Positions 24,746 through 64,000 of a stretch of DNA of 64,000 nucleotides are shown here, piece by piece. This stretch comes from Paragordius varius (taxonomy: Eukaryota > Animalia > Nematomorpha). Each line of letters starts with the position of its first letter. The first letter of the stretch is position 1. The position numbers and the translations under genes were made by a program. The stretch spans positions 4,774,001-4,838,000 of the forward strand of contig OZ176058.1 in NCBI GenBank assembly GCA_964247055.1, given 5' to 3'. Below the pieces are notes generated by a model, which was not told the DNA's origin, searched no databases, and saw only the letters and a program-made list of their open reading frames with translations.

Positions 24746-27283
24746 GGTTGATTTTATAACATATTTAAGTAGTTAGTAAATATAACCAACAATCAATATT
24801 ATTTAAATGATTAACATAGTAACTTAATATTTTTAAATTGGTAAAATTAGTATGTAGTATAATTTATGTAAAGAATAAAAACTAAAAAATAATACAGTAA
24901 AATTTAATACGGACAAAACCTAAAAATATAAAGAAAATATTTTTTAAAAAGACAACCATACTTTTTAAATCTTGATTATTTTCGATATAAATGGTAATTT
25001 TAAATTAAAAGGTATTAAATACGGTTGTAAATAGGAAACCCCATAAATTTTATATTTTGTAGTTTAAAACAATGAGGTATATTGAAATAAAATAAAATTT
25101 TAAAATGGGGTTGTCTTTTAGAAAAAAAATTTGTCTTTATATTTTTACGTTTTGTCCGTATAATTTCAGTTTTTACTGTAAGTTAAAACTCTCAATTGGA
25201 AATTAAAGTGCAGTATAATTTATGCAAAGAATAAAAGTTAAAAAATAATACAGTAAAATTCGAAATTATACTATGGACAAAACGTAAAAATATAAAAACT
25301 CTTAAAGACAACATCCCTTTTTTAAACTTCATTTTTAAAAATATAAATTATTGTTTTAAATTGTAAAGTATAAAATTGATATGTATATTGGACACAATCA
25401 ATTATATATATTTTTATAATTGTAATTATATAATAAATATGAGAAAAATTAAGGTTTATATTGTCTTTTAGAAAAAAATATTTGTCCGTATATTTTTACT
25501 TTTTGTCCGTATAATTTCAATTTTTGCTGTATATTTCTCCATATTGAATTTTGATATTATTAACGCAAACCCATCGTTTTGAGTCACGAAATTAATATAA
25601 AATATAACCTTAAAATTTAAAAAACTAATATTTTTAAGAATACCATTAATATGGTTGTCATTTTTAGATATTGTTTTATCTGCTGATTCTTATATTTTTA
25701 AAGCATGTTGATTTAAAGGTGGTCCGTACCAATTTATTAAAATTAAAATTTACAGACAAAACTTAAATCATAAAGAAAAAGGAAAATAAAAATTGAAATT
25801 ATACGGACAAAATGTAAAAATATAAAGACAAATATTTTTTTGTAAAGACAACTATACTTTTAAAATCTTAATTATTTTATATAAAACTCATTGTTTTGAA
25901 CTGTAATTATGAAATAAAGATGTTAATTTGTAAAACAATCAATTATTAAATTTACAATTGAAATTAAACAATTATTATAGGATATTCAAGGTTTTAATAA
26001 GTAGATTGTTTTTGGAAAAGAATGTCTTTATATTTTTACGTTTTGTCCGTATAATTTCAATTTTTATTGTATGTTTCAAAACACAGCCGTACTTTTTTGC
26101 GCCTTAATTTTTTCTATATATTAATTAGTAAAAATTGTATAATTGATTGTTTGCATTTTAAAACAATGAGTTATATTTTAATAAAAATTTCAAAACGGCA
26201 GCCTTTAAAAAAATATTATCGTATGGTTTTGCGTTTTGAGTACATAATTTAAATTTTATACTATTTATATTTTATTAAAACAGCCATATTTTTTAGATAT
26301 TTTTTATAATGTGCTTATCGTTTGTCACGAAATATAAGGAATATTAAATTTATACAGAGAAATAAAAACTTAAACATAAAGAACATACAGTAGTAACTAA
26401 AATTATACGGACAAAAAGCAAAAATATACGGACAAATATTTTTTTAAAAATCATACTTATATAAACACTTTAATTTTATAAATTATATGATTACAATTAT
26501 AATATATAATTTATTGTGTCACCAATATACATATCAATTTAATACTTTACAATTAAAACCCAACAGTTCATATTTTTAAAAATAAAGTTAAAAAGTATGG
26601 GGTTGTCTTTTGGAAAAAAAATATTTGTCTTTATATTTTTAGGTTTTGTCCGTATAATATCAAAATTCACTGTACTTTTAATATGTTATTATGTCCAAAA
26701 ATATAATCTTTTACTTATTAATATTTTGTTTTTATAATATATTGTCCATTATTTTTGTTTCGTTGTATGGGCTCAGGATATAATTGCTAATTACCGCTTT
26801 ATCGATTGTGTGGGTATTTTACAGTAAAAATTGAAATTATAAGGAAACACAAAACGTAAAAATATAAAGACAAATATTTTTTTTATAAAACACAACCATT
26901 CTTTTTGTATCTTGATTAATTTAAATTTAACTCATTGTTTTAAACTGCAAAATATAATATAGACCTAATAATTGATAACAGAATCAATTAGGAATGTTTT
27001 TTTACGATTGTAATTTAATAATTATTTTTATAGGATAAATTAAGGCAGTTTAAAAAAGTATGGTGGTTGTCTTTGGAAAAAAAATTGTCTTTGTATTTTT
27101 ACGTTTTGTCCATCGTGTAAATTCAATTTTTACTGTAATAAAGCATAAGAAGTGTTTGTAAAAGTCGGACTTTACACCTAAAATTTCACAAAATCATAAC
27201 GAAAATATAAATATACAGCAAAGTTTCCATATATATTTTTTTTCAAAAAACAACCTTATGTAATATTTTCCAAATATCAATTA

Positions 27284-29244
27284 CAGTCATGTCTATATAG
27301 AATTGTCTTTTTTTTTTATTTAAATGATTATAATTTTTTTTTAATTGTTTTGATGTTTGATATGTCAACTTTCAACATGCGCATTTTTAAGCCTTAAAAT
27401 AATAATAGCCTATTTAGTGTAAGAATTTTTAATTTATAATTAAAAGATATTGCAAAATATTATTCTTGATGCACAACATGCACATATTGTAATTTTTATC
27501 TTTTGTAAAATATTAATTATAAAATTTTATTAATAAAGTTTAAACACACATAACCAAAATATAATTTAAAAGATAAAAATATTTATTGATTATAATATTT
27601 AAATAAATTTATAATTGTTTTCATTTTCTAGGGGTTTTCTTTGCATACATTCCAACAAAATATGTGAAGAAAAATTATAATAATTTTTTAGATTTTTTTC
27701 CCTTCTCTCTTCGCAAAGTCTTGCAATTTTATTATGTTGCTCTAGAGGGGTACTACACCGGGGTTTTTTATCATATTGATGTTTAATCTCATGAAAAAAA
27801 CATTCAATGGGATTCAGTTGTGGCGAATATGGAGGTAAATAAACTATTTTATTCCTTAGGTCACCTAACACCGCGGCTTTGTGAATAGGTGCATTATCGC
27901 AAACTATTATTGAACTTTCAGGAATTCTTGTTAAACATTCCGTCAAAAAAATTCGAAAATCATCGCCTCTAAAGGCGCCTTCTTTTGTTCTGTAATTAAT
28001 AACTCCCTGACAACCAATCATACATATCAATGAAACATTTTTTCCTAAAATAAATTCAAATTTTACCTTTGTTAAATCCCTCTACAATAGGAGATTTGCC
28101 CTTTGGAGCTCTACCCCATATATTTGTAAGTTTCAAACTGAAGCCTGACTCATCAATAAAAAAAACTTTTTCCTGTGGAATATCTTTCACCAATCTGGCA
28201 TAATTATAACGCTTTTCTATATTCTCTGGGGTGTTTCGTTCCCGAGGTTGTAAAATACACCTCTTTCGAGTAATTTCTGAATCCGAGAGAATTTTGTAAA
28301 TAGTTGCTCTGCATACTTTAATATGGTCTGGTATTTGTTCCATTATTTCATCGATTGTTAATTCACAATCATTGTTTATTAATCTTTTGACAGCATCTAT
28401 TATTTCTGGATTTCTGAATTTGTTACGCCGACCAGATTTATTTCTATCAGTAGAATTCCCAAGAATTATTTTTCTTCTTAATATATTTATAGATGTTAAG
28501 GACATATCAAAATAATCCAAAAAATAATTTGAGGGTTTTTCCAAATTTTTGGGATCAAAAAATAATTTTTTAGCTCTATCTATTTTTTCCTTATTCCAAA
28601 AATTATGTTCTAAAATTTAAAAATATTAATACTTTTATGTTTTATTTTTTCACGAGATAATTCATTTTCATTCAATGGAACATCCAAATCAGATACTACG
28701 AATTGTTATTTTTAAATACTTGAAGACTCTTCACTTGTATCCGATTCAAAAGTATAAACTGAGGGAGCTATGTTTTCCTTTAATATTGGATTTTGTTCTG
28801 AATTTTTATTTTTTAATATAAACCTTCAAGTACACTAGCTGCCGAGCAAAGAAGAAATAATGGGTTATCGTTGATATTCATAATTTTTAAAAATAACTCT
28901 AGATTTATGATTTATTTCTTTATATATATAGAGATTAATTGGACATCTGCTTGGGTTTTCTTATATATTTTAAGTGCATGTTAAAAACCCCTAGAAAATG
29001 AAAACATATATTAAACTTGGTTATCATAAATTACATGCGCATGTTGTAGATAAAATGTTCAAGAATAATATTTTGCAACATCTTTTAATTATAAATTAAA
29101 AATTCTTACACTAAATAGGCTATTATTATTTTAAGGCTTAAAAATGCGCATGTTGAAAGTTGACATATCAAACATCAAAACAATTAAAAAAAAATTATAA
29201 TCATTTAAATAAAAAAAAAAGACAATTCTATATAGACATGACTG
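27284..29244 (-). mobile_element. Full-length IS630/Tc1-like DNA transposon, 1961 bp, long TIRs, TA TSD
   Basis: TA(27282-3)|CAGTCATGTCTATATAG...CTATATAGACATGACTG|TA(29245-6). The outer ~185 bp of the TIRs are almost identical, and weaker similarity continues to about 27640/28981. The empty site with a single TA is seen in the mirror arm near 63630-63645. Confidence 0.97.
27599..28881 (-). CDS. DD30E transposase, 395 aa, 5 exons separated by 26, 24, 23 and 22 nt introns
   Basis: Exons 28881-28824, 28797-28720, 28695-28633, 28609-28067 and 28044-27599 total 1188 nt and give one open frame from ATG to TAA. Motifs: FIDESG, WGRAPKG, DNAPIH, LPPYSPQLNPIE. Confidence 0.92.
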
Positions 29245-29406
29245 TAATTAATTTACAAGATATCCAATTGATTGTACAATTTACATTTCATTTAATACCA
29301 GTTAAAACGATATATTATATTTAAAAAACAAGTGTTATTTTTCATTATTTTAATGTAAAAAACATTACAAAAAATTTTAAATAAGAAAATTTACAATTCT
29401 ATAATA

Positions 29407-30303: not shown

Positions 30304-33300
30304 TTATAATTTCAAAATAATTAATGCCACGCACAGGAGTAAAACTAAAAAAGCCAACGAGAAAATGCATAAAAGTTTTCCATAAGACGCTCTGCTATGC
30401 AAAGTGGCCGCTTTAGTTAATTCGGTTAATCCTGTGCTTATGGTTTGTGTCGAATGTTCAATACTGTAATCTATACGATCTAACGTTGAACCCTATATAT
30501 GTATACAGTAAAAATTGAAATTATATAAAATTGCTACATTTTTATAAAATTTAAAAGAATATAAAAGAATTTTTTTTAGAGAAACCCGCTGAACTTTTTT
30601 TATACTAGATTTATTTAAAATTGTTCGAGGGTAAATTTGAATAGTAAATGGTATATATGTGTGTCTGTGTAAAATAAGCCCTCAAAAAAATATAATTGTA
30701 ATTTGACAAAAATCTTTGCTTATGTTTTCTTATAATTTAAATTTTTGTATAATATTTACAAGTTAGTTTATAGTTTAATTTATATTTTACGTTTGACAAA
30801 TAGTACTGTAGTAATCTAATTACCCCATAAATTCATTTAATTTTAACTAAATTATAATTGGGCAATAATAATATAAATTATTTTTCGGTATTTTTAAACC
30901 TATTTTTCAACTAATAAATTTAATATTACCTAACTAACTTTAAATATCTATGAACAAAAAAAGGTAAAAATATGCACAATAAGAGATGATTCTTAAATTA
31001 TTTTATAGTTTTATGTACTAAAAAAATTGTATTTTAAAAATATTTTAACAAAAAGATTATAATAACATTTTACCTGATCGTTTACCAATGTGCCAATATC
31101 GTGGAAAAGAGTATTTAAATCTTGAATAGATTGCACAAGACTGTTAATTTCTTTTTCCTTGTGCCTGTAATAACTCAATTCCCCATCAATGTCTGAAAAG
31201 AGTTTCTCCCTTTTTTGTAAGGATGTCTATATTTGGTAAATTATAAATAATTATTAATAAATTTTTTTTAAACATAATAATAATGTTTTTATTTGGAAAT
31301 TTTAAAAACTATCAAAAATTGTAAAAATTGTGTATATAGAAAAGCATGAATAATGAAATGTTTAATTTGAAAATAAAAAATATGAAAATTTTTGGAAAAA
31401 TATAATTAATCTAAATTTAAATATTTAACTTGTTTATAATTAAAATTATATTATATTTCCTAAATAATATTGATTCAATTTAAAAATTTTTAAAACTTTT
31501 AATACAATATAAATTTTTGAATAAATGTAGTATATAGATGGCGTTTATTTTTATTACTGCTAATTATTTAAAACCTTAAATTTTTTATAAACTAAACTCA
31601 TTATGAATTAGAAAAGGATAGATAGAAATAATTGCCTCAAACAATTTAATTAGATATTTCACACATTTGTGAATTAATTGGTTTTTCTTGAATAATTTTT
31701 TGAAATAAAAAAATTTGTCTTTATATTTTTACGTTTTGTCACTTCTATACATTCAAGTTTACTGTATAATTTAAAAAAAGCTTATATTTAAAAAACTATT
31801 ATATTATATTTCCTAATAATATTGTTTAAATTTGAAATTTTTTAATATTATAGTTAAAATTATCAAAAAAAATGTTATTTTTTAAAAAATTATTAATAAT
31901 ACAAATATCTTGTAATCCATATAATTATAAAGAAAAAATAAGTTTATGAAATCAATTATAGTTAAATTTACCAAAAAAAATGTTATTTTTAAATTATTAA
32001 CAATACAAATATCTTGAAATCCATATAATTATAAAGAAAAAAAAGTTTATGAAATCAATTATATACTATAAATTTCAAAATAAAATGTTTTATTTGAAAC
32101 TCGTAATTATAAATTAAAAAAAGAGTATCCAATATTTCGATATAAACTATTTAAAACTAACTTTTTGAAAGCGTTCAAAATTTGAGTTTAAGGAGTTATC
32201 AATTGATTGTTGATGGTTTATTATATCCATTTCAGACATTATAACATTATTATCGCTGGGGTGTTGAGAATTCGACGAAGTCAATTTATTTTCCCACAAA
32301 ATTTTTGTATTGATAGTTTCATCGTGTTCCTAAATAGTTTTTTTTATTATTACAGTAAAAATTAAAAGCAAAATACGTAAAATATAAAGACAAATATTTT
32401 TTTGTTTTCTAAAAGACAACCAACTCCATACTTTTTATTTAATATACCATTTACAATTCAAATCTACCGCGTACAACTCAAAATGACCCTCGAAACAATT
32501 AAAATCACTCTTGTAAACAATTCGAATTCACTCTTCAACTATTTGAATTCACCCTTGAACAATTCAAATTCACCCTGCGTACATTTCAAATTCACCTTTG
32601 ATCTATTAAATATCACCCTTGAACAATTTAAATTCACCCTTGTGAAATTCGAAATGATCCTTGAACTATTCAAATTTACCTTTGAACTATTAAATATCAC
32701 CCTTTTTAACATTTCGAATTCCCCCTAAACCAAATTATGTGTTTTGTTTAATATTAAAAATTACCTTTATTTTTTAATATTTTTCAACATATGAAATTGT
32801 GTTTAAAATTAATATAATGCTGAAAAAATATGAAACTATGTCCAAAAAAAAATATTTCATATTAATGATGAGTTATGTTAGATTGAAAGAAAACACATAA
32901 TATATTGTTCGAGGGTGGATTCGGATTGTAAATGGTATATACCTTAATATATTTAAAATATTACTTATTGTGTTTTGGGTTGCAAAATAAAGATTAGTTA
33001 TGTAAATTGTGTTAATCCACTCAATTATATATCATTTTAAAATAAAATTTCAAGTAGATTATAAGGGGAAAATTTCAAGGTGTGTAAAAGTATGGTTGGT
33101 TGTCTTTTTAAGAAAAAATTATTTATTGTCTTTATATTATTACGTTTTATAATATAATTACAATTTTTACTGTAATATTTTCATGATTAACATTTGCTTT
33201 TGTGGTTGTTTTATAATCCATGGTGGGGGTCGTATTGTATTGTTCATACAGTGTTTTAAATCTTTCAATTTCTAAGTAAATAATATTTATAAAGTTTATT

Positions 33301-36300
33301 ACAATTAATATTATTTAATATTAAACTACAAATGTTTTTAAGACGCCATACATTTATTTTTTCATTTAAATTTTAATATACCATTTGCACTTCAAAAGTG
33401 TCCTTAAACACTTCAAATTGGTCCTTGAACATTACACTTCAAGTTGGTTATTAAAATTTTTAAGTTTTGATTTAACCATAATTTTTACATATGTTTTTTA
33501 ATTTAATATTTTTTAACCTAATTCTCTTTATATATTTTATTCCTTAAAAACAAATAAAATCCAAAAACCACTTTTTTGTCTCAAACTAATTTTTTCCAAT
33601 TTAACCAAATTATTACCTTATGAATGTTTGAAATGAAAACTGTATTATTTAACCCAGAAAACTTTTTTGATTAGATGTTATAATCTTATAAATATCCAAA
33701 ATAATTTTAAGAAATAATAAATATATACGGTTTCTGAATTATTAAAAGTTAATATTGATTTAAAATTATGTTAATATATTGAAAATATGTCAAAAACGAT
33801 AAAGTAGATGAATGATTTACGATTTAATTGATAAAAATAAAAAAGAGAACAAACAAAGTCAAAGGACCAACTTAACGTGCAAATAGTATATTTAATATTT
33901 TTTCCAACCTTATTAAGACAAAAGTAAAAACATGAAAGGCGTTTTATTTGGTTTAAAACTCTTTATATTTAATTCACTCTAAAATTTAATAAAATTCGAA
34001 ATTTCATTTTTAAACTTTAAGATAAGTGGATTGACTTCGACGAAAAGACAAGGTTAAATCACACAATTTTTTAGCTGAAAAGTTGTTATATTGCGTTTGA
34101 GTTGCATTTCCTTAAGGCATTTTTTCAACAGAATTTGTTTCAAAACTCAAAAAATTAGTTATTTTATTCACTTTAAAACATTTTCAAAATTTCAATTTGG
34201 AAAATTTGAAAACTTTAAAACACCTTTAAGATAAGTAGATTGACTTCGGCGAAAAGACAGAATTATATATATAATGTTTAAATTGCATTTTTTGAAGCGT
34301 TTTTAAACAGAATTTGTTATAAAACTCAAAAATTAGTAATTTTATTTACTTTGTAACATTTAAAAACTTTAAAGCAAAACCTTTAAGGTAGGTGGGTTGA
34401 CTCCGTAGAAAACTCATATTACGATTAAATTGCATTTCTAAAGCGTTTTTTCAACAGAATTTGTTTTAAAACTCAAAAAATTCAAAAGTTTTTAAAGCAA
34501 AACCTTTAAGATAGTGGATTGACTTTGTCGAAAACTTAGGGTTAAATCACATTATTGTTTAGCTATAAAAGCTGTTTTTTTCGCTTAAGTTGCATTTCTT
34601 AAGCGTTTTTTTAACAGAATTGTTTCAAAACTCAAAAAAATTTCGAATTTCAAAGCAAAGCCTTTAAGATAAGTGGATTGACTTCGTCGAAAACTCAAGG
34701 TTAAATCACACGATTTTTTAGCTGAAAAAGTTGTTTTTTGCGTTAAATTCCATTTCTTAAGGCGTTTTTTCAATAGAATTTGTTTTAAAGCTCAAAAAAT
34801 TATTTTTATTCAATTTTAAAACTCAAAACTTCTTTAAACCTTTAAAATAAGTGGTTTGACTTCGTCGAAAACTCAAGGGTAAATCACACAATTGTTTAGC
34901 TAGAAACGTTGTAATATTGCGTTTAAGTTGCATTTCTTGAAGCGTTTTTATGAAGTATTTGTTTTAAAACTCAAAAAATTCGAATTTCAAGACAATCCTT
35001 TAAGATAAGTGGATTGACGTCCCAAAAGTAGCTGAAAAGGTTGTTTTTTGCGTTACCAATCAAGAAAATTCAAAAACTTAAAAGGAGAACCTTTAAGGTA
35101 AGTGGATTGACTTTGTCGAAAACTCAAGGTTTTACACAATTTTTAAGCTAAAAAAATTGTTTTTTTGCTTTTATGCATTTCTTTTTTCAACAGACTTTGT
35201 TTTAAAACGTTAAAATTAGTTATTTTATCCGCTTTAATACTTCGAAATTTTAATTTTAACCAGAAAAAAAGGAAACCTTTAAGGTAAGTGGATTGACTAC
35301 GGCGAAAAGACAAAGGTAAATTACACATTTTTTAGCTAAAAAGTTGTTTTATTGCGTTTAAGTTGCATTTCTTGAAACGTTTTTATTAAGAATTTGTTTA
35401 AAACTCAAAAATTAGTTATTTCATTCCTTTTAATTTTTAATTATTTTAAACAAAAAAATTGAAGGCAAAACCATTAAGATTAGTTGATTGACTACGACAA
35501 AAAGACAAGAAGTCATACAATTGTTTAGATATAAAAGTTGTTTTCTTGCATTTAAATATATTTCTTGAAACAGAATTTGTTTTAAAACTCAAAAATTAGT
35601 TTTTTTATTCACTTTGAAAATTTTTAAAATTTCAATTTTCAGAAAACAAAGGAGAACCTTAAGATGAGTGGATTGACTTCGTCGAAAACTCAAGGTTAAA
35701 TCACACGATTTTTTAGCTGAAAAAGTTGTTTTTTGCGTTAAATTCCATTTCTTGAAGCGTTTTTCAACAGAAATTGTTTTAAAATCAAAAAATTTATAAA
35801 TTTCAATTTCCAGAAAACTTTAAAGCAAAACCTTTAAGATAAGTAATTGACTTCGTCAAAAAGACAAGGTTAAGTCACACAATTGTTGGACTAAAAAAAT
35901 GTTTTTTGCGTTTAAAATGCATTTCTTGAAGCGTTTTTCAACAGAAACTCATGAAATTCAGAAATAAACCTTTAAGTTAAGTGGATTGACTTCGACAAAA
36001 AGTCAGAAATAAGTCACACAATTGTTTGCTTTTCTTAAAACTATTTTAAGCAAAATTTGTTTCAAAGTCAAAAAAATATTTTTTTAATGATTAAAAATTT
36101 CAATTTCCACAAACCTTTAAAGCGAAACCTTTAAGATAAATAGATTGACTTCCTCAAAAAAGACAAGGTTAATCCACACAATTGTTTAATTAGGAAAGTT
36201 GTTATATCACGTTTAAGTGGCAATTTTAAAGCGTTTTCAACAGAATTTGTTTTAAAACTCAAAAATTAGTTATTTTATTCACTTTGAAAATTCAAAAACT

Positions 36301-39241
36301 TTAAAGCAAACCTTTTAAGATAAGTAAATTGATTCCGTCGAAATGTCAAGGGTAAATTACACAATTTTTTAACTGAAAAAGTTGATTTTGCGTTTAAGTT
36401 GCATTTCTTTAAGCTTTTTTATAAGGAATTCGTTTTAAAACTCAAAAAAATTCAAAATTTCAAAACTTAAACTTTCAAGATAAGTGGATTGACTTCGTCG
36501 AAAAGACAAGGTTAAATCACACAATTGTTTAGCTAGGAAAGTTGTTTTATTACGTTAAAATGCATTTCTTGAAGCGTTTTTATGAAGAATTTGTTTTAAA
36601 CTTTCCAGAATATAGAAGCAAAACCTTTAAGATAAGTGGATTGACTTCATCGAAAAGACAAGGTTAAGTCACACAATTGTTGAACTAAAAAAGTTGTTAT
36701 ATTGCGTTTGCATTTGTTGAAGCGTTTTTCAACAGACTTAGTTTTAAAACTCTATTTTAACACTTTGAAACATTTTCAAAAATCAATTTCCAGAAAACTT
36801 AAAGCAAAACCTTTAAGGTAAGTGGATTGACTTCGACGAAAAGACAAGGTAAGGTCACACAATTGTTTCGCTAGAAACGTTGTTATATTGCGTTTGAGTT
36901 GCATTTCCTTAGGGCTATTTTTGCCTTCTTCTGTAATGGTGTTGTTATTGAGTTGATGTTGTTTTTGATTATTTATGCGTTTGACTAGTGATTGACAATG
37001 TTGTAACATCTATATTATATATATATATATATATAAATCTAAACCCTTAAACAATGTAAATTCACCTTTGATAATACTTTTTAAAACATTTTTACCTGTA
37101 ATAATTTATTCACTCTTCTTTAAAATATCAAGAATATTGGGGACATTTGTTAAAGTATAAATCAAAAAGGAATTATATAAAAAAAATTCAAAAAAGTATT
37201 TGTCTTTAAGAGTTATTTGCATTTCCTTTTTTATTTTTAACTTTAACATTCTGTTATTTTTAATTGTGTAATTTTTTTTAAAAAAAAAACTTTTTTTTCC
37301 GATATAAGGTTAACCCATACAATATACGTATCAATTCTCACAAAAATCTCAATAAATTCCATTTTTTTATCATTTTTTATTTTTTTGATAATACTTTAAC
37401 ATTTTCACCTGTATTTTTGTATTTACCTGAGTTATTTGTTTACTCTTCTTTAAAATATCAAGATTATTGGGGACATTAATTGAATATAAAATCAAAAAGG
37501 AATTACATAAAAAAAATATTTGTCTTTAATATTTTCATATGCTTTTTTATATATTTTTAACTTTAACATTATTTTTAATTGTGTAATTTTTATAAAAAAA
37601 ACTTTTTTTTCAGATATAAGGTTAACCCATACAATATATATTCTGCCAAAAAAATCTTAATAAATAGTCATTTTTATATTTTTTTAAATTTTTTGATAAT
37701 ACTTTAACATTTTTACCTGTAATATCTTAAATCGTGTAGTTTTTAAAAAAACATTTTTTTAAACATAACAATAACCCATAAAATATATGTTACATTTCTG
37801 ACAAAAAATAACAATAAATATCAATTTTTTGGACATTTCCAAATTTTTTAATTTTCGAAACATTTTTAAAACATTTTACCTGTAATATCCATTTTGTAGT
37901 TTTTTAAAAAAACTTTTTTTCAGATATAAAGATAACCCATACAATATGCGTGACAATTCTCACAAAAATCTCAATAAATATCCATTTTATATATTTTTAC
38001 AAATTTTTTGATTTTTTAAACATATTTACCATTTTTTAATTGTGTAGTTTTAAAAAACTTTTTTTCAGTAGATAACCCATACAATATATATGTCAATTCT
38101 CACAAAAATCTAAATAAATATCAATTTTTTTAGCAAATTTTTTGATTTATAAAAGTTTTTAGGAATTTCACCTGTAAAATCCTAAATCGTGTAGTTTTTA
38201 ATAAACTTGTTCAGTAATAAAAATAACCCATACAATATATTTGATAATTCTCATAAAAACCTCAATAAATATCAATTTTTTGGATCTATTTTCCAAATTT
38301 TTTGATTTATAAAAGATTTTTAAAAAATTTTTACCTGTAATATCCATAATTATGTAGTTTTAAAAAAACCATTTTTTAGATATAAAGATAACCCATACAA
38401 TATTTGTATCAATTCCCACAAAAATCTCAATAAATATCCATTTTTTTGGATTTTTTTGATTTTTATGATTTTTAAAACATTTTTACCTGTAAAATCCTAA
38501 ATCGTGTAGTTTTTAATAAACTTGTTCAGTAATAAAATCTCAATAAATATCCATTTTTTCCAAATTTTTTGATTTTAAAACATTCTTAAAAGATTTTTAC
38601 CTGTAATTTTCAATAATTTACCTGAGTTATTTGTTCACTCTTCTTTTGAATGTCGAAATTATTATTGGTGACATTTATTTTAGTGGAAAATAAAACAATA
38701 AAAAAAATTCAAAAAAATTTTTGTCCTTAAGAACACATTTAACATTTTTAACTGTAAATTATTGAAAAAACCATTTTTTCAGATTTAAAGATAACGTATA
38801 CAATATACGTAACAATTCTCACAAAAATCTCAATATATATCCATTTTTTTAGATTTTTTAGATTTTTATGATTTTTAAAACATTTTTACCTGTAATATCC
38901 ATAATTATGTAGTTTTTGAAAAAGACAATATATGTAACAATTCTCACAAAATTCTCAAAAAATATCCATTTTTATACATTTTTTCAATTTTTTATATTTT
39001 TTGATACCTTTTTAAACATTTTTTAAAACATTTTTAATTGTAATCTTGTATAATTTACCTGAGTTATTTGTTCACTCTTCTTTTGAATGTCAAGATTAGG
39101 ATTATTGGGGACATTTATTTGATTGGTATTATAAGTGGTATCATCTAAAGTTGGCATACTAACTTTCTTAACATGCAACGCATCTAATTCAATAATTTTT
39201 TGACCAATTTTTTCAATTCCATAGTTTACCTTAAATAGAGA

Positions 39242-39275
<34 letters not shown>

Positions 39276-49312: not shown

Positions 49313-49349
<37 letters not shown>

Positions 49350-49360
49350 TCGATTTCAAG

Positions 49361-52300: not shown

Positions 52301-55300
52301 CTTCCTAGTTAAAAAATTGTGTGATTTAACCTTGTCTTTTCGACGAAGTCAATCCACTTACCTTAAAGGTTTTTTTGTAATTTGATTTTTTGAGTTTTCT
52401 GGAAATTGATTTTTTGAAAATGTTTCAGAGTGAATAAAATAGCTAGTTTTTTGAGGTTTTTCTATTAAAAACGCCTAAGAAATGCCATTTAAACGCAATA
52501 AAACAACTTTCCTAGCGAAACAATTGTGTGACTTAACCGTGTCTTTTCGCCGAAATCCACCTATCTTAAAGGTTTTGCTTTGAAATTCGAATTTTTTGAG
52601 TTTTAAAGCGTTTCAAAGTAAATAATTAACTAATTTTTGGGTTTTAAAACTAATTCTTAATAAAAAAAAAACGCTTAAGAAATGCCATTTAAACATTATA
52701 TGACTTAATTCTGTCTTTTCGACGAAGTCAATCCACTTATCTTAAAGGTTTTTTTGTAATTTGAAATTTTAATTTTTTTGAGTTTTAAAACAAATTCTTA
52801 CGCTTCAAGAAAAGCATTTTTAACGCAAAAAAACATTTCAGTTAAAAAATTGTGTGATTTAACCTTGTCTTTTCGCCGAAGTCAATCCACTTATCTTAAA
52901 GGTTCAAAATTGAGTTTTCTCGTAAAAATTGAAATTTTTAAACATTAAAAGAATAATTTTTTTGCGTTTTAAAACAAATAATTCGTTAAAACCCTTCAAG
53001 TAATCCCACTTAAACATTATATGACTTAATTCTGTCTTTTCTACGAAGTCAATCCATTCACCTTAAAGGGAAATTCAAATTTTTTGAGTTTTAAAACAAA
53101 TTCTTCATAAAAACGCTTCAAGAAATTTAAACGCAATATAACAACTTTCCTAGCGAAACAATTGTGTGACCTTACCTTGTCTTTTCGCCGAAGTCAATCC
53201 ACTTACCTTAAAGGTTTTGCCTTAAAGTTTTAATTTTCTTGAGTTTTTAAACAAATTCTGTTGAAAAAACGCTTCAAGAAATGCAACTTAAACGTAATAT
53301 AACAACTTTTTTAGCTAAACAATTGTGTGACCTTACCTTGTCTTTTCGACGAAGTCAATCCACTTATCTTAAAGGTTTTGCTTTAAAGGTTTCTGAAAAT
53401 TGAAAATTTGAAAATGTTTCAGAGTGAATAAAATAGCTAGTTTTTTGAGGTTTTTCTATTAAAAACGCCTAAGAAATGCCATTTAAACATTATATGACTT
53501 AATTCTGTCTTTTCGCCGAAGTTAATCCATTCACCTTAAAGGTTTTGCTTTGAAGTTTTTGAATTTTCAAAGTTTGAGTTTTTTAACAAATTCTGTTGAA
53601 AAACGCCTTAATTATGCAACTTAAACGCAAAACAATTTTTCCTAGCTAAACAATTGTGTGACTTAACCTTGTCTTTTCGACGTAGTCAATCCACTTATCT
53701 TAAAGGTTTTGCTTTAAAGTTATGAAATGTTTCAGAGTGAATAAAATAACTAATTTTTTTGACTTTTAAAACAAAATCTGTTGAATAACGCTTCAAGGGA
53801 AAAAAATATATGTCCTCTTTTCATGTGTCATTTTAAGTTTTAAAAATCAAAAATTTTGGTTTCTTATGGGCAAAAAATATTTTATTATATAATTTGCATT
53901 TGGTTTTTAAAATTTTAACTTAACAATATATTTATTTAATATAGATTTTCAACAAAAATAATATAAGGGTTCTTGGAATTATTTGTATTTTAAACATTTT
54001 TTATTCATAATTGTTATGTCTTTATCTTTCTTGTTTTTAACTGAATTTTTTTGACCCCTAATAATTTTTTTATTTAATATAAAGTGTAAAAAAGTACACT
54101 ATTTGTAGAAGAAATTATATATTAATTTTTACATTTTTTGCCTTTATAAAATATAATATACAGTATGAGTAAGTATATATATATATATATATATTGCTAG
54201 AAAGTTATTTATTATTGCCAAATAGTAAATACAAAAAAGGGGGCTTAGAGTTATTTTTACTTTTTATTATTATTAGCCAATAATAGTGCGCCCTTTATTG
54301 TATTTACTATTTGGCAATATTTAATAACTCTCTGGCAATATATATTCACTCCTGTATTTAATAAATATATCAAACTTGAAATGTTCAAAGGACCAACTTG
54401 AAGTGTTTAAGGACACTCTTTATGTGCAAATGGTCCAAAAAATTTTAAAAATAAATGTATGGCGTCTTAAAAACATTTGTAGTTTAATGTTAAATAATTT
54501 ATATTATTTACTTAGAAATTGAAAGATTTCAAACACTGTATGAACAATACAATACGACCCCCACCATGGATTATAAAACAGCCACAAACGCAAAGGCAAA
54601 TGTTAATCATGAAAATATTACAGTAAAAATTGTATTTATATATATAAAACGTAAAAATATAAAGACAACAATTTTTTTAAAAGACAACCAACCATACTTT
54701 TAAAAACCTTGAAATTTTTTCCATAGAATCTATTTGAAATTTCATTTTAAAATATATAATTGAATGGATTAACACAATTTACATAACTAATCTTTATTTT
54801 GCAACTCAAAACAATAAGTAAAATTTTGAATAAATTAAGGTATATACCATTTACAATTCAAATTCACCCTCAAACAATCCAAATTCACCCTTAAACGATA
54901 TATTATGTGTTTTCTTTCAATCTAACATAACTCATCATTAATATGAAATATATTTTTTGGATATAGTTTATTATTTTTTCAGCATTATATAAATTTTAAA
55001 CAAAATATCATATTTTGAAAAATATCAAAAAATAAAGGTAATTTTTAATTTTAAACAAAAACACATAATTTATTTTAGGATAAATTTAATTGTTCAAGGG
55101 TGATATTTAATAGTTCAAAGGTAAATTTGATTTGTTCGTGGGTGGATTTAAATTGTTTAAGAGTGATTTTTAATTGTTCAAAGGTGAATTGAATAGTTCA
55201 AAGGTGAATTCGAATTGTACGCAAGGGTAAATTTGATTTGTTTGAGGTGAATTTGAACTGTAAATGGTAGATTTAAATTCTTTTTAAATTGTTTAAGGGT

Positions 55301-58300
55301 AAATTTAAGGGTAATATTTTATAGTTTAAAGGTGGATTCGAATTGTTCACAAGAGTGAATTTGATTGTTCAAGGGTGATTTTTAATTGTTCAAGGGTGGA
55401 ATTTTTAAGGGTGATTTTGAATTGTTCAAGGGTGAGTTTAATTAGTTCTAAGGTGAATTCGAATTGTACGTGGTAGATTTGAATAGTTCAAGAGTGAATT
55501 TGAATTATTTAAGGGTGGATTTTAATTGTTTAAGGGAGAATTCAAATAGTTCAAAGGTTAAGTTGAATTGTACACAAGGGTAGATTTGAACTGTAAATAG
55601 CATATTAATTTAAAAGTATGGAGTTGGTTGTCTTTTAGAAATAAAAATATTCTTAATATTTTTACCTATTTTGTCTTTTTTACTTTAAAAATAAAAAAAA
55701 ACTATTTAGGAACACGATGAAACTAACAATACAAAAATCTTGTGGGAAAATAAATTGACTTCATCGAATTCTCTACACCCCAGCGATAATAATGTTATAA
55801 TGTCTGATATGGATATAAACTATCAAAAATCAAATGATAATTCCTTAAACCCAAATTTTGAACGCTTTCAAAAAGTGAGTTTTAAATAGTTTATATCCAA
55901 ATATTGGATACTCTTTTTTTAATTTATAATTGCAAGAAAAAAAGCTAGTAGTATTTTTGAAAAAATATTTGTCTTTATATTATCACGTTTTGTCCGTATA
56001 AATTTAATTTTTATTGTGATAAAAAAAGCTTTGTTTTAAATTTAAAAACTATTATATTATATTACATAAATAATAATGTTGAAATATGAAATTTTTTAAA
56101 ATTTTAAATAAAATTATCAAAAAAATATAACTAAAATAATGTTAATTGTTTTAAAAATTATTATTAAAATTGTATAATTTAATACAAATATTTTGCAATC
56201 CATATAAGAATATAGAAAAAAATTTATTAAATCAATTATACTAATAATTAAATTTTCAAAAAAAAATGTTTTATTTTAAAATTTTTTAGTATATAATTGA
56301 TTTTATAAACTTTTTGTTTCTTTATAATTATATGGATTCCAAGATATTTGTATTATTAATAATTTTTTAAAAAAATAACATTTTTTTAAATTATAATCAC
56401 GAAAATTAAAACATTTTATTTTAAAACTTATTAATATAATTGATTTCATAAACTTTTTTTCTTTATAATTATATGGATTCCAAGATATTTGTATTATTAA
56501 TAATTTAAAAAAATAACATTTTTTTTTTCGATAATTTTAACTATAATATTAAAAAAAATCAAATTTAAACAATATTATTAGGATATATAATATAATAATT
56601 ATTAATTTAATATAAGTTTTAAGCCTTTTTTAAATTATACAGTAAAGTTTGATATTATATCGTATCGTCTTTGTGTAATGGCTAGCCATTGTATCCGTAT
56701 AGAAGTTGTCTGTAATATTTGCGATCCTGCCAGGCGTTATCATCAATGTTGGCAACACTTAAATCATTATTTATTGTTTTTTCCCAGTTGAATGTTGGTC
56801 TGCCCCTGCGATTGTTACCTTCGGGATGTAGGGATAAAATTTTATTTGTCCATTGTTCTGGAGCACGTTTGATGTGTCCGAAATATCTGAGCCTATTTTT
56901 TCTGAGCATGACATTTAAAGGTTCAATTTGGTAGAGTTGATGTAAATTTGAATTTGACTTATTGGGTTGGAATAAATTTAGTATCCGTTTTTCTAAGTTC
57001 ATTAGTTTTTTCTCGATTGAATCTGTCATCGGCCACGTTTCGCAACCATACAGGAGTATGGGACGTATGCCGGCTTTGTAAATCAAACCTTTGTTTTTTG
57101 CTGATATGTGTTTATTTTTGAGGACAAATTTAAGTTGATGATATTTTACCCAAGCCTGTTGGGATCTATATTTAACTGATTGGTTTATTCCACCTAGGCA
57201 ATGTATGACATCACCCAAGTATTTGAAATTATTCACCAATTCGATTTTGGTGTCTGCCATATAAACGTAATTTAGGGAAGTGGATGAGTTATTTATTGTT
57301 TTATTTTTACATGATTCACATATAAATTTGTCATTATTGATTAGTTTCCCTTTTATAAGCGAGCACTTTTTGTGTACCCACTTATTGCATGATGTACATA
57401 GGATTGAATTGAGTTTAACATCTAAATCACATACTCCACATGGAAACTTAGGTCGTTCATATACAGTTTCACCCGTTATCATCACCTTTGTTTTGCTTAT
57501 ATTTATATTCATTCCACCCTTTTCTAAGTGTAATTTCCATGTGTTGTACTTTTGATTTAATGCTTCCATTGATGTTGCGGTGAGGACAATGTCGTCCGCA
57601 TAGATAAGTTCCCATGGTGGGCCTTGTTTTATATCTTTTGTTAGGTAATCCATTATTAATATGAAGAGTAGAGGGCTTAGGATGGAGCCTTGATGAAGAC
57701 CAGATTCGTTTGGAACAAAAGCTGTGTTACCTAGTGTTAATCTGACGCAGTTTGTTGTTTTGTAGTACATCATTTCTATTGATTTAATTATCCACTCATC
57801 TACATTATTGGCTCGTAGTGTGGATGTGATCAACTTCCTGGGGATACAATCAAAGGCCCTTTGTAAATCAATAAAAACATGATATAGTTTTTTATTTTTC
57901 GCTAAATAGTTCTCTTGCAATCTTCTCAAAATGAAGATTGCATCAATTGTGCTACTGTTTGGTTTATAGGCATATTGTGATTCCTGTATACAAACGATTG
58001 ATCTTAGTTTTGATTCAATAATGGATTCAAAAATTTTTAACGGGTGTTCCAATAACTTAAGTGGTCGGTAGGAGGAGCAAACGAGTATGTCTCCTTTGTT
58101 TTTATAAATGGGTATGATGGTGCTTTTTGACCAATCATTAGGGATGCGATTTGTTGATAAGATTAGATTGAATATGTTAGTTAAATGTATAATGCATTGT
58201 GGTAAAGCTTTGATCATGTCACAGCTGAGTTCAGATGGACCTGTAGCTTTGTTATTTTTCATCTTGGCCAAGGCATCTCTTACATCGTCTGTTGTTATCA

Positions 58301-61300
58301 ATGGTCGAGGACCAATTGCTGGTGGTTGGTTTATTGTTTCAAAATCATGTTTTTGTGCAAATTGTTCTTTGTAATACGTTGTCCAGACATTGCTTATGTC
58401 ACTCCACTCAGTTACTAGTTGTTGATCTTTATCTTTAATATAGGAAATTTGTTTAATGTCCTTTTTATTATTGTTAACTGAATTTATTGTTCGAAAAATC
58501 TTAAGATTTTTCATGTCTTGTTCTAATTTTTTAGCTAAATCCAAAGCTTTTTTGTTGGCTGAAATATTGATGGCTTGTTGTAAATTTTTATTTGATTTGA
58601 TATATGATTCCAAGTCTCTTTTATCTTTTGTTTGTTTCCATCTTTTATAGTTATTGCGTTTAATTTTAATTAAAGGTTTTATGGATTCTGACCACCACAA
58701 ATTTGATTGTTGTTTTTTCCTGTATATTTTCTTTCTGCCACAGCAATTAAGCACATTTGGGATGATGCTGTTTTTAAAATTATCCCAAGCTTGTTCAGAT
58801 GTTTTGTGGTTGAGGCTAAGCGATGCATTGACAGTTTCTGAGAGTTGAAGTTTAAGATCAGGAAGGTGTAATTTTTCTAAGTTTATTTTAGGTTTCTGGT
58901 TACTATGGTAATAGGATTTGTTTATTGTTATTATAGCTACAATTAATTTATGTTGCGTGTCAGTAAGGTATGTTTTAGAGTCTTTAATGAATTTTCTATC
59001 TTGAATGGGTGTTAAAATGTAGTCTACCATAGAATTTTGATTACCACTTGTATAAGTTATTAATTTCTTTGCTGGTTTCGTGAAGAGGGTATTGCAGATA
59101 GTAAGTCTAAGAGATGCGCAGTATTCCAATAATGTATCACCTTCTTTGTTACGGCTGCCAAAAGCGTTTCCTCCATGTATTCTCATATAGTCTTCACCAT
59201 TAGTGCCAACGTGGGAATTGAAATCTCCACCTATAAAAATTTTGTCATTTGGAGGTATTGCATGGGAAATGTCGTATAGTTGGTTCCAAAAGGCTTGTTT
59301 GGTTGCTTCGCTTAATCCAGACTGGGGAGCATAGATGGAAAGTATGTTAAGAATTTGTTTTTTAAAGCCGATACGTATTTGGATAATTCTTTCGTTGTGT
59401 CTGTTTACTTCTATTATATTATCACAATATTCATTTTTAATAGCTATAGCCACTCCATGTTGGCCTTTCATTTGACCTTTGTAGAAAATTGTATAATTGT
59501 CTATATTCAGCTTTCCCTCAGATTTATATCTTGTTTCCTGGAGGCAACAGATGTCAATGTTTTTCTCTTTTATTTGGTCGATAACTAAGTTTGATCTACC
59601 GACTAGCGTCGAGATATTCCAAGTGCCGATCTTAAGTGGTTTTACCATATTGTTGGGTGTTTTTTGATGTTTGTGGTTTTTTAGGAGAACATTAATATTG
59701 TTATCATGTAAATTAATATTATTATCAAAATTAAGATTATCACATATATTAATATCATTAATAAAATTATTTGTAAGATTAATATTATCATTTTTAAAAT
59801 ATATATCATTGTTTAAAAGTGTTGTCAATTCATTCATTATTTTCATATACGGTATGATTAAGGCGATTGTTTTACAATTTGCATGCCTTTGCAAATCAAG
59901 AGACTATTTCGGTGTCCCTGACCTATGGAATTGCCTTTCTGGGCTTACGGAGTTCCATCTCCGCTTACATATATTACAAATTGGTTGTTTCTAGCAACTG
60001 GTTATAGCGCCAGATAAACCCGCTTTATCATCTGTGTGAATGCAGGTATTGTGGTATTTTATAGGAAAAAATAATGGTAGTTTATTTTTTCCACCACACC
60101 CCACACAGATGATTTCTTTCCTTTGCCGCTCCCGTTGGTATTAACCAGGGTGCACCACGTGGAGGTGGGAGTCGGACTTTGCACCCCCACTGGAGGTGGG
60201 AGTCGGACTTTTAAAGACAAAATTTTTTTTCCAAAATCAAACACGTCATACTTTACGTATTCTTGCTTTCCAAGAAAAATCAATTAATTTACATAATTTT
60301 AAAATATCTAATTAAGCTGTTTGAGGCAATCATTTCAATCTATCCCTCTCTAATTCAAAATAATGAGTTTAGTTTTTAAAAAATTTAAGGTTTAGAAAGT
60401 TTAGAGGCAAGAAAGAATCAAAGATGAAGTGCTTTAATTATATATACACGCCATCTATATCTTACATTTAATTCTATTCAAAAAATTTATATTGTTTTAA
60501 GTTTTAGGAATATTTTAAATTGAAACAATATTATTTAGGAATAATATAATATTTGTATTAAATTTAAACAAGTTTAAGCTTTTTAATTTTTTATTATTAA
60601 ATTTTTTCAAAAAAATTTTTTTAATAATTAAATATTTTATTATTTAAATTTAAGCTTTTTCATTGATATAATTTTATATTTTAATAGTTTTTAAATATTT
60701 TCAAAAATATTTGAAAATAAAATTTATTAATAATTATTTAATTTACCAAATAAAGACATCCTTACAAAAGAGGGAAAAATTGTTTTCTGACATTGATGGT
60801 GAATTAAGTTATTACAGGGACAAAGAAAAAGAAATTAACAGCCTTGTCCAATCTATTCAGGATTTAAATGCTCTTTTCCAGGATATTGGCACTTTGGTGC
60901 AAGATCAGGTAAAAATTTTATTTTATTTTTAATTTAACTTTTTATCTTTTTGTTAAAATATTTTTAAGATATGATATATAAATTTAAAATATTATATATT
61001 ACATTTTTCATATAACTTTTAAATTTTTTATACTTAAGAATATTATATTAATTAATTAATTAATTGGAATTTTAAAAAAATATATAAATTATTGTGATAT
61101 CCATTTACATCTGTATTGCATATATCATGTACCATTTACAATTCAAAATTATCCTTGAAGAATTCTAATTTACCCTCAAACAATTCAAATCTCCCCTCAA
61201 AGAATTATATGTTTTTTAAAAATTTACCTATATTTTTAAAAAATAAAATTTTTTTTTAAATTAAAATTATATTAAAAAAATAAATAACTATGCCATAAAG

Positions 61301-61676
61301 ATGTATTTCATAGTAATTATAAGTTATATTAGAGTTCGAAAACATATTTTTAGGGTGAATTCGAATTGTTCGAGGGTGAATTTCTGTTTGAGGGTAAATC
61401 TAATCTGTAATTATATAACTCATGGTTTTAGATTATGCGGATTATATTATTATTATTTAGTTTTTAAAAACAAATTGTAGATGGCGTTCTTGTCAAAAAA
61501 ATTCATTCTTAATTTCTTGCATCGCTTATTACTGTACATATCTATTTCGTACTTTGCAACCTAAAACAACTAAATTTTAAAAATTTGTGGTTTTTAAAAT
61601 CTAGAGCTAGCTATGTTTTTTAAAAAAAATTGTTTTACTATTACATTACTTTTTTCTGTAGAGTTTCAATTTTTAC

Positions 61677-61762
<86 letters not shown>

Positions 61763-62567
61763 AATATACAGTATGTATTTTAATGGCTACTTATTTCACA
61801 CTATAGTAGGGCAATTTGCAACACAGTAGGGTATGGAAAAAACCATAAAATGTTGAATTAACATTATTGCCTTTCTTTTTTTCATACACTCTTGTGTTGC
61901 GAATTGCCCTACTAAAGTCATTAAAGATTGAAATTATACGGACAAAAAGTAAAAATTTACGGACGAATATTTTTTTTAAAGACAACCATACTTTTATAAA
62001 CCTTAATTTTTAAAAATATAAATCATTGTTTTAAATGTAAAGTATAATATTGATATGTATATTGGCGACACAATCAATTATATATTTTATATTTTAATTG
62101 TATTATAAGGTTTATAAAAGTATGGTTGTCTTTTTTTAAAAAATATTTGTCCTTATATTTTTACTTTTTGTTCGTATAATTTGAGTTTTTACTGTATATA
62201 TATATATATTCCCAGTATGCAACTCAAAACAATGAGTTATTCTTTAAATATCTACTTTAGAAAAGTTCAGTGGCTTTCTCTAAAAAAAATTCTTTCACAT
62301 TCTGTTTAATTTTAATTTTTATCGTATAAAAATGTAACAATTTTATATAATTTCAATTATTACTGTATACATATATAGGGTTCAACGTTAGATCGTATAG
62401 ATTACAGTATTGAACATTCGACGCAAACCATAAGCACAGGTTTAACCGAATTAACTAAAGCGGCAACTTTGCATAGCAGAGCGTCTTATGGCAAACTTTT
62501 ATGCATTTTCTCGTTGGCTTTTTTAGTTTTACTCTTGTGCGTGGCATTAATTATTCTGAAATTATAA
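49361..62567 (+). CDS. STX16: Second syntaxin-16 copy: exons 4-9 only, 319 open codons plus stop
   Basis: Exons 49361-49531, 51808-52003, 54516-54601 (or 54622), 55710-55874, 60756-60908 and 62379-62567; splice sites and frame are intact. No copy of exons 1-3 was found upstream on this strand. Confidence 0.8.
52004..53800 (+). repeat. Mirror satellite of the STX16 exon 5 end plus donor (10 units)
   Basis: gtcaatccactta(t/c)cttaaagg anchors at about 52165, 52348, 52553, 52728, 52880, 53048, 53192, 53360, 53520 and 53684. Confidence 0.95.
56651..60211 (-). mobile_element. Apparently full-length RTE-clade LINE inserted in intron 7 of the duplicated STX16, antisense to it
   Basis: Single ORF 56682-59894 (first ATG about 59849) with APE (GTWN, QET, YAP, GDFN, DYI), RT (YADD) and PHD domains. 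GC-rich 5' UTR to about 60211 and a short ACGAT-like 3' tail. Absent from the mirror arm (about 31720-31760). No TSD was recognised. Confidence 0.96.
61681..61759. repeat. (TA)n microsatellite; shorter tracts at about 37011, 39250, 45385, 49315 and 54175
   Basis: Direct inspection. Confidence 0.95.
61806..61912. mobile_element. 107 bp MITE with TA flanks, right arm only
   Basis: TA|GTAGGGCAATTTGCAACAC...GTGTTGCGAATTGCCCTAC|TA. Confidence 0.8.
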
Positions 62568-64000
62568 TATATTATTCCTATTCGTATTTATTAATTGATT
62601 GATTGATGTTATACAGTAAAGAAGAAATAAATACAAAACTTGAAATTTGATATCTAGTTTATTCATGTTTTGTATATCGAAAACTACATCATTTTTTTGA
62701 ATTCATTATGATATTCAATTAATTGAATGTAGTCTTGTATTACAGTAAAATTGAAATTACATGGACAAAACGTGAGAATATGACAAATATTATTATCTAA
62801 AAGGCATCCATACTTTTTAATAAATGTTTCCCCTATAAGCTACTTAGTTACAATTTTAAAATATAGAATTGATTGTGTTAGTATTATGTATCTTTATTTC
62901 ACACTCTGCCGTTTAAAACAATGAATTATATCGATATAAATCTTAAAAAGTATGGTTGTCTTTTAAAAAAATATTTTTCTTGATATTTTTACGTTTTGTC
63001 CGTATAATTTTATTTTTTACAGTAATATTTAAAATTATAAAGACAGAACATAGAAAGTTGAAACTAATTTGGTTTATCTTTTGCTCAATATAAAGCAGAC
63101 GATATTGTTTTTATAATGTTTTCGATTCTACATAAACTTTTAAATAATATGATCTGTTAAATTACAATAAAAAACAAAATTAGAAACTCAAATTTTACTT
63201 GGTTGAACAAGGAAAATTGAAATAAAAACTGTTATATAATAGAGCGTCTTATGTAAACATTTATTCATCTCGCTAGCTTTTTTAATTTTACTTTTCTGTA
63301 CGTGGCATTATTACAGTAGCATATGTCATAATACATTATTAGTCCGTAATAAAATAAAAAATTGTTTTTTTTAAAAAAACAAGCCTAGTTGTATATACAC
63401 ATATCCATAATAGCCCCTTGTTTTTTTATTCTTTTATGGACTAATATTGTTTTATAGCCATACGCTACTGTATTATGAAATTATAAATTTCTCATTTATT
63501 TATAATTTTTTGTAATGTTATTCACATTAAAATAATGAAAAATAACACTTGTTTCTTAAATATAATTGATCGTTTTAATTGGTATTAAATTGAAATGTAA
63601 ATTAAACAATCAATTATATATCTTGTAAATTAATTAATTGATATTTGGAAAAAATTACATAAGGTTGTCTTTTGAAAGAAATATATTTCGAATTTTTATT
63701 TATATGTATATTTTTATTACAATTTTCGTGAATTTAAGGTGTAAAGTCCGACTTTTACAAACACTTCATATCCTTTATTACAGTAAAAATTGAAATTATA
63801 CTATGGACAAAACGTAAAAAAATAGATACAATTTTTTTTTCAAAAGACAACCACCATACTTTTTTAACTGCCTTAATTTATCCTATAAAAATATTTATTT
63901 AATTATAATTGTAAAATACATAATTGATTCTGTGTTATCAATTATTACTCTAAATTATACTTTGCAGTTTAAAACAATGAGTTATATTTTAAAAATAAAC

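Follow-up and report, generated by a model that had tools for sequence, protein, structure and literature searches.

Syntaxin-16 and yeast Tlg2 are Qa-SNAREs of the route leading from endosomes into the trans-Golgi network (TGN) and are regulated by Vps45 (PMC7470827). Head-to-head gene pairs in large palindromes are known, e.g., from mammalian sex chromosomes, and partial, 5'-truncated duplicates and young unprocessed pseudogenes make up another described class (PMC3449122). Here, we consider a locus of the nematomorph Paragordius varius where these phenomena meet. The window, i.e., the whole stretch of 64,000 nucleotides that was analysed, comprises positions 4,774,001–4,838,000 of contig OZ176058.1 (hereafter C9) in the assembly GCA_964247055.1. 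It harbors two copies of a syntaxin-16-like gene (STX16), copy A on the minus strand and copy B on the plus strand, disposed head to head in a giant inverted duplication, and copy B lacks its first three exons.

The remaining exons of copy B are open, correctly bounded, and bear the imprint of codon-level constraint acquired on the copy's own branch. Our tentative explanation, to which we assign a rough probability of 0.48, is that B was kept by selection nearly throughout its existence, was beheaded late at miniature inverted-repeat transposable elements (MITEs) with TTAA ends, and is now a very young unprocessed pseudogene without any disabling mutation yet.

Two palindromes and a four-copy syntaxin-16-like family

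Coordinates below are relative to the window, with negative numbers and numbers beyond 64,000 denoting its flanks, of which 200 kb were fetched. The window has a G+C content of ~22% and lies ~230 kb from the end of the 5.07-Mb contig C9 in an assembly of 110.6 Mb; the window and flanks together (264 kb) contain no N. A self-comparison of the window with BLAST revealed a long collinear reverse-complement chain with 75–90% identity per piece, in which ~26.9–41.4 kb corresponds to 64.0–47.9 kb. When the flanks are included, the mirrored homology extends from 6,822 on the A side to 71,642 on the B side, the latter limit being outside the window and located 15 bp from the end of another MITE, of the same family as the MITEs found at the palindrome centre (see below). 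The left arm (6,822–45,281, minus strand) carries copy A together with the sequence neighbouring it downstream, and the right arm (plus strand) runs from 47,945 to 64,000 and on to ~71,642 beyond the window, so that two collinear arms face each other in reverse complement around a spacer. In the left arm, positions 6,822–41,826 are homologous to the right arm, and positions 41,827–45,281, comprising exons 1–3 and an upstream block, match only the two further copies of the family, C and D. The inverted segmental duplication is real and old. It is also larger than the original prediction had it: the left boundary proposed there, 26,915, turned out to be merely the mirror image of the window end.

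Scanned as a whole with the Pfam SNARE model, the assembly returned four near-identical last exons, all of them on C9, two in the window and two ~105 kb downstream. The latter belong to copies C (434 codons, 135,870–147,686) and D (437 codons, 150,239–167,938), both complete, which form a second head-to-head pair with start codons 2.55 kb apart. This second palindrome occupies C9:4,907,861–4,965,000 and beyond (~133.9–191 kb relative to the window; loci L015–L022). The A/B palindrome is therefore one of two that hold a four-copy family of syntaxin-16-like (Tlg2-type Qa-SNARE) genes near the end of the contig. Direct, i.e., not mirrored, homology was also observed between the stretch from -12,000 to 6,800 and those at 114.7–123.8 kb and 94–98 kb, relating the outer flank of A (including an RNF121 satellite region upstream of the window) to the outer flank of C. 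The unit that was duplicated spans no less than 57 kb, and segmental duplications are nested throughout this end of the contig.

The gene model was derived from the four-locus alignment and includes nine exons with AG/GT at each boundary in the alignments of the four copies; the open joined frame was built locally and used for codon counting only, and database searches were made exon by exon. Copy A (30,304–44,899, minus strand) is complete, with 435 codons in an open joined frame and a Pfam SNARE match on exon 9. Its exons 1–5 are located at 44,813–44,899, 43,900–44,007, 42,561–42,692, 39,059–39,229, and 36,811–37,009, and exons 6–9 at 33,171–33,271, 32,162–32,329, 31,074–31,226, and 30,304–30,492. 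Copy B (49,361–62,567, plus strand) consists of exons 4–9 only, found at 49,361–49,531, 51,808–52,003, 54,516–54,622, 55,710–55,874, 60,756–60,908, and 62,379–62,567, with 326 open codons and a normal stop.

The identity of the family as syntaxin-16/Tlg2-type Qa-SNAREs is suggested by the domain order, the Pfam match of exon 9, and weak structural matches of exon 8. The Pfam model PF05739 scored 34.7 bits on exon 9 of B (cut-off 26.8) and 33–33.7 bits on all four copies in the genome scan. The search of exon 8 against solved structures gave the SNARE chains of Tlg2, 9zcs_D and 5buz_C, as the best matches, above syntaxins 1 and 7, with weak scores (E 0.003–0.004). In all four translations, the last codon of exon 8 encodes Gln and exon 9 opens with G-S/T-T-L-D-R-I-D-Y; we take this Gln at the exon 8/9 junction, on the strength of the general syntaxin motif, to be the SNARE zero layer. 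The frame of each copy ends in a hydrophobic stretch of ~23 residues (read by eye from the translation), as befits a C-terminal transmembrane anchor. Copies A, C, and D begin with M-A-T-R-G-L-F-D..., a start that resembles the N-peptide of STX16 and is absent from B together with exon 1; a search of exon 1 against solved structures returned no match.

The comparison with syntaxin-16/Tlg2 concerns the putative N-terminal peptide, the helical Habc region, and the SNARE motif ending in ...DQ|G..LDRIDY before the C-terminal membrane anchor (PMC7470827). The differences lie in the presence of four linked copies in place of the usual one, in the long Asn/Thr/Gln-rich insertions in the linkers, and in copy B, which is devoid of the N-peptide and of the start of helix Ha. 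Parts of the coding sequence also recur outside the exons. In all four copies, the introns contain a satellite made of many repeats of the 3' end of exon 5 (…KRNITTFLAKQLCDLTLSFRRSQSTYLKG) along with its donor side (in the window, at 33,990–37,009 and 51,808–53,800), and the end of exon 4 is echoed within intron 4 (37,373–37,525). These arrays are older than the four-way duplication.

The missing head of copy B and the MITE junctions

Exons 4–9 proved to be intact in both arms, as had been noticed originally. In B, they show no stop and no frameshift across the 326 codons, every indel is in frame, and all 11 splice sites (11/11) retain AG or GT. The exon-level counts reported earlier for the two arms were likewise reproduced: the lengths of exons 5, 6, and 7 differ by 3, 6, and 3 nt; the six substitutions in exon 9 are all silent, leaving the protein identical; and exon 8 differs by four residues, its substitutions totalling 18. 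AAG acceptors occur at 39,230 (A exon 4), 49,360 (B exon 4), and 60,755 (B exon 8), in place of the CAG or TAG of the sister copies; the change from TAG to AAG at the exon 8 acceptor is the sole splice-site change private to B.

The absence of exons 1–3 from the right copy held in the search of the whole assembly, which found exon 8 four times and exon 2, exon 3, and the 500-bp block of exon 1 and its upstream sequence three times each. Since the head parts occur exactly three times in the assembly, B is truly headless, and its head is absent from the genome and not merely from the window. The explanation that B appears headless because the window ends was rejected, since the 5' end of the gene faces the palindrome centre and the assembly contains only three heads. 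With regard to B as a possible unprocessed pseudogene, the promoter block and exons 1–3 with the start codon are lacking, and the remaining 326 codons and their splice sites are undamaged.

The sequence of the palindrome centre indicates where the head was lost. Next to exon 1 of A lies its upstream block and spacer (44,900–46,144): the block itself (44,900–45,281) is conserved at 86% with C and D, and the spacer is collinear with the unique spacer of C/D. It is followed by the first TTAA-ended MITE (copy 1, 46,145–46,720, plus strand), of which the C/D spacer retains a collinear fragment. Then comes a stretch at 46,721–47,132 (plus strand) that BLAST aligned at 81.8% with A 41,411–41,826 in direct, not mirrored, orientation; it is a flipped remnant of B intron 3, the innermost surviving sequence of B, which stops ~0.7 kb short of the expected position of exon 3. 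A second MITE (copy 2, 47,366–47,944, minus strand), which shares 95.5% identity with copy 1 and has the inverted orientation, resides in B intron 3, and the mirrored homology of B to A intron 3 stops at 47,945 (A 41,408), directly against this element. In A, the corresponding site (41,408/41,411) is empty and reads TTAT; both MITE junctions read TTAA and are base-exact, and the two flanks of the site sit on opposite MITE copies. Thus, 0.4 kb of intron 3 between the two MITEs is inverted relative to the rest of the arm, and the flipped piece, together with the site flanks split between the MITEs, is the signature of an exchange between inverted repeats. The part of the centre at 47,143–47,365 comprises a lone MITE-end fragment and ~180 bp. 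Elsewhere, it is matched only once, next to a MITE of the outer flank of copy C, and no counterpart of the 233 bp at 47,133–47,365 could be located in the C/D spacer.

The MITE family is ~580 bp long, with TTAA ends and the end sequences TTAACACTTCGATTC… and TTAACACTTGGATAC…. In the window, its members occupy sites at 46,145–47,944 and 7,773–8,265, and outside it they were encountered at ~70.2–70.8 kb, 71,657–72,243, 77.2–78.7 kb, 124.1–124.6 kb, and 183.3–183.8 kb. Members of the family stand at the inner as well as the outer boundary of the B arm, and the two copies between which the arm lies turn the same end inwards, so that a transposase-made rearrangement or a composite element is conceivable.

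It is most likely, judging from the collinearity of the spacers, that B was once complete. The region upstream of A up to MITE 1 is collinear with the unique spacer of C/D, the MITE fragment included: the 380-bp block, the segment 45,564–45,953, and the MITE at 46,145–46,720 have their counterparts in C/D at 149,863–150,235, 149,224–149,637, and 148,652–148,971, respectively. Since the spacer is shared with a palindrome that has retained both heads, the two-headed palindrome would predate the split into two palindromes, and ~4–5 kb would have been lost from B afterwards. Accepting this, most of the selection signal in B can be inherited from its period as a whole gene. The MITE pair, for its part, is closer (95.5%) than the arms (75–86%), and therefore the intron 3 MITE and the rearrangement that required it are younger than the duplication.

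The scenario that we favor would, therefore, start with an entire B gene, paired head to head as C and D are, and maintained by purifying selection for almost all of its independent history. A MITE would then have inserted into B intron 3 and exchanged with the inverted MITE of the spacer, flipping the segment between them, the head included. Most of the flipped segment, with the promoter block, exons 1–3, and part of intron 3, would have been deleted afterwards, leaving in exons 4–9 a selection signal inherited mainly from the whole-gene period. The order and the date of these rearrangements, as well as the present silence of B, are inferred.

Constraint on copy B and the competing explanations

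Over exons 4–9, the six pairwise comparisons gave a silent divergence (dS) of 0.20–0.27 and a dN/dS ratio (omega) of 0.14–0.20 by four methods. The dN/dS check named in the original prediction yielded an omega of 0.135–0.19 for A versus B and ~0.2–0.25 for the own branch of B. The non-coding divergence amounted to 11–21% and was about equal for every pair in conservatively filtered columns, intron 8 included; the four-way alignments of introns 4 and 8 are unreliable (apparent distances 0.2–0.48), and without intron 8 the pairwise non-coding p-distances were 0.11–0.16. The four copies are roughly equidistant, with near star-like site patterns (AB|CD 35, AC|BD 36, AD|BC 17).

Singleton changes, private to one copy, were used as a measure of its terminal branch. 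There were 8 silent and 5 replacement changes in A, 14 and 11 in B, 16 and 16 in C, and 11 and 13 in D. The neutral expectation for the frame of B, derived from the substitution spectrum of the introns, is 70% replacement, 7% nonsense, and 22% silent changes; neutrality is rejected for the B branch (p = 2.8e-4), and the silent-to-replacement ratio of B does not differ from that of the three complete copies (Fisher p = 0.82). Codon-level constraint on the own branch of B is, therefore, real. The original prediction went further in proposing purifying selection on a copy already headless; the constraint stands, along with the lack of lesions, and selection continuing after the loss of the head is one of two possible readings. 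Its wording that B "is, or until recently was, translated" is fair, as the data fit both options.

The limits on a neutral period can be set from the same counts. With a disabling rate (nonsense, frameshift, splice site) of 0.155 per neutral substitution in the frame of B, estimated from introns, a joint count model gives the probability of observing at most 11 replacements and no disabling change as a function of the neutral fraction of the B branch: 0.30 at 0%, 0.11 at 5%, 0.037 at 10%, 0.0036 at 20%, and 2e-5 at 40%. The counts are compatible with a neutral period of up to ~10–15% of the branch. Either the head was lost in the last ~10–15% of the history of B (less than ~1% divergence), or the headless B is still under selection. 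Independently, the MITE pair bounds the event to the last 35–45% of the branch, its 4.5% divergence corresponding to 2.2% per copy versus a branch of 5–6%.

Two further explanations were weighed. Palindromes and repeat-rich centres are difficult to assemble, and the centre in question is full of MITE copies, so that divergent haplotypes or a mis-oriented contig might have been joined, with a false deletion of the head of B. Such an artefact appears improbable, because no pair of copies looks allelic (all four are mutually diverged by 11–21% in non-coding sequence, with dS of 0.20–0.27), transposon insertions and satellite sizes are peculiar to each arm, B has a structure unlike every other copy, and the head-to-head design is found twice, 105 kb apart; there is, moreover, not a single N in 264 kb, and the MITE junctions are base-exact with TTAA. 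The haplotype mis-join, offered as an alternative in the original prediction, was accordingly rejected as unlikely on divergence and structure, by sequence comparison alone. Arm-to-arm gene conversion, in turn, is typical of palindromes, and repeated conversion from the working A could keep the exons of a dead B clean; the divergence is indeed uneven along the arms, e.g., in C/D, with 92% identity over the inner 575 bp and a dS that rises from 0.10 in exons 1–3 to 0.27 in exons 4–9, a gradient of identity toward the centre that suggests local conversion there. For A/B, such homogenisation was not observed: dS (0.21) is not below the intron divergence (0.11–0.17), and therefore the exons have not been recently overwritten. 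Conversion would also erase the changes private to B, not skew them to silent ones, and B retains 25 private changes, 14 of them silent. Exon-directed conversion was hence rejected and is, in our estimate, the least probable of the explanations considered.

A far more serious contender, though short of even odds, is that B continues to function as a gene whose transcripts have a new 5' end and encode a syntaxin-16 without the N-peptide. Such an end could come from divergent transcription starting at the A promoter 4.1 kb away, from a promoter borne by a MITE, or from a first exon that is non-coding and is joined to the phase-0 acceptor of exon 4. The protein would also lose part of helix Ha if its translation begins at codon 25 of exon 4, where the earliest in-frame Met of B is located, and, not being held by the Sec1/Munc18 (SM) protein Vps45 via the N-peptide, it could be an unregulated or modulating Qa-SNARE. 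In its favor speak the omega of the B branch, similar to that of A, C, and D; the frame free of stops and frameshifts, with only in-frame indels and 11 splice sites kept; the absence of private replacements from exons 4 and 9 (0/11); and the shortness of the neutral period allowed by the counts. By our own calculation with a uniform prior for the decapitation over 0–40% of the branch, the data prefer continued constraint to death at decapitation by a factor of ~7. Tlg2 truncated at its N-terminus is stable in vitro as a protein, although it is neither bound nor rescued by Vps45 (PMC7470827), so the product of headless B, if made, would be an unregulated SNARE; partial gene duplicates are common and some of them are functional (PMC3449122, PMC6092874). 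The narrower proposition, that B is still selected and expressed from a makeshift 5' end (the divergent promoter of its neighbour or a MITE) as a Qa-SNARE independent of the SM protein, is plausible to a slightly lesser degree.

The search for such a 5' end gave nothing to build on. On the plus strand between exon 1 of A and exon 4 of B, no open reading frame combines a start codon with a phase-0 donor, nor is there a G+C island resembling an exon, and therefore B is without a visible replacement head or promoter; a non-coding first exon may nevertheless exist upstream of exon 4. The whole-assembly search found no conserved upstream block of the family for B, and no in-frame ATG directly upstream of its exon 4 was read in the sequence. 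The possibility of a chimeric gene with a divergent neighbour was rejected, as 44,900–49,360 (plus strand) offers only frames of 25–36 codons in MITEs or in sequence with 11–27% G+C. A word search with B exon 5 in the public protein collection gave no candidate and no transcript-derived copy-specific fragment. The Rfam SL1 model, probing for a spliced-leader source of the 5' end, found no match, and the controls were equally silent, making this result uninformative.

Several points weigh against the view that B died when it lost its head. Death at beheading forces the event into the last ~10–15% of the branch, which amounts to a coincidence of timing; should the age of the decapitation equal that of the 4.5% MITE divergence (~35–45% of the branch), a neutral history from that point on is rejected (~1e-4 to 1e-5). 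The replacements in B are not in excess over those in the complete copies, and its present silence is an assumption. At the same time, the 7-fold factor must be weighed against the low prior of function for a fragment without a promoter and a start codon and against the choice of this case for its intact look, which is biased toward recently broken copies. On balance, we place the recent decapitation of a formerly selected gene slightly above a headless gene still at work.

Neighbouring elements and comparison with known systems

The arm-specific insertions announced in the original prediction were confirmed. A Tc1/mariner-like transposon (27,276–29,252, minus strand) is specific to the 3' flank of A; it has inverted ends of 194 nt (99% complementary) and a DDE_3 domain (63.7 bits), and the B arm is empty (contiguous) at the corresponding site, 63,635/63,636. 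An RTE-like non-LTR retrotransposon (56,685–59,903, minus strand) with APE, RT, and a PHD finger lies antisense in intron 7 of B, which measures 4,881 nt versus 935 nt in A. Its frame of 1,073 codons is intact, and the insertion is, therefore, probably recent. A second RTE-like copy (APE, RT, PHD-type finger) with a long open frame is present at 1–2,553 (minus strand). Farther out, at 9,600–15,500 (plus strand), there is a tandem array whose units encode a motif of ~40 residues (…SNDLERFTKSKGSAVGQLQFLAKVD.LSHQADLRTKRKL) without a match in Pfam; the array is much contracted in the B arm (~68.2–69.1 kb) and occurs in the flanks of C and D as well.

The locus allows the fate of a duplicate gene after a transposon-mediated rearrangement has removed its head to be followed in a clean and datable case, and the rate and pattern of change can be checked internally against the three complete sister copies. 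An expressed B would represent a syntaxin naturally devoid of its N-peptide, a counterpart of the N-terminal truncations used in SNARE biochemistry, and a partial duplicate rescued by a borrowed promoter. A silent B would be the mark of a very recent rearrangement and would help to calibrate how fast dead genes decay in an extremely AT-rich genome.

The scar at the palindrome centre resembles rearrangements between inverted transposons, or alternative transposition as in the maize Ac/Ds system: a segment has been flipped between two copies of an element that are inverted to each other, its breakpoints coincide exactly with the TTAA ends of the element, and the flanks of the target site are divided between the copies. 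In contrast to that system, the mechanism here is inferred from a single scar, and it accounts in detail neither for the deletion of 4–5 kb nor for the lone MITE end (47,143). As in other partial duplicates and young unprocessed pseudogenes (PMC3449122), B retains introns and a 3' block of exons, its promoter and first exons are gone, and its fate lies between decay and reuse. Unlike in those duplicates, the truncation appears secondary, a complete duplicate having been beheaded later, and the frame displays no decay, with omega equal to that of the complete copies.

The arms, finally, share with the large gene-pair palindromes, e.g., those of mammalian sex chromosomes, their mirrored layout over tens of kilobases, the short unique spacer, the head-to-head genes, and the locally uneven divergence between arms. 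They differ in being old (11–21% non-coding divergence) and full of private transposon insertions, so that a general ongoing homogenisation is absent; in the presence of the whole palindrome as two diverged copies; and in the shortening of one arm at both ends beside MITE ends. Palindromes of this genome can, thus, themselves be duplicated and later eroded at MITE ends. Overall, the A/B locus combines a diverged palindrome and a partial duplicate, both already known, and is a good natural example of them, not a new kind of system.

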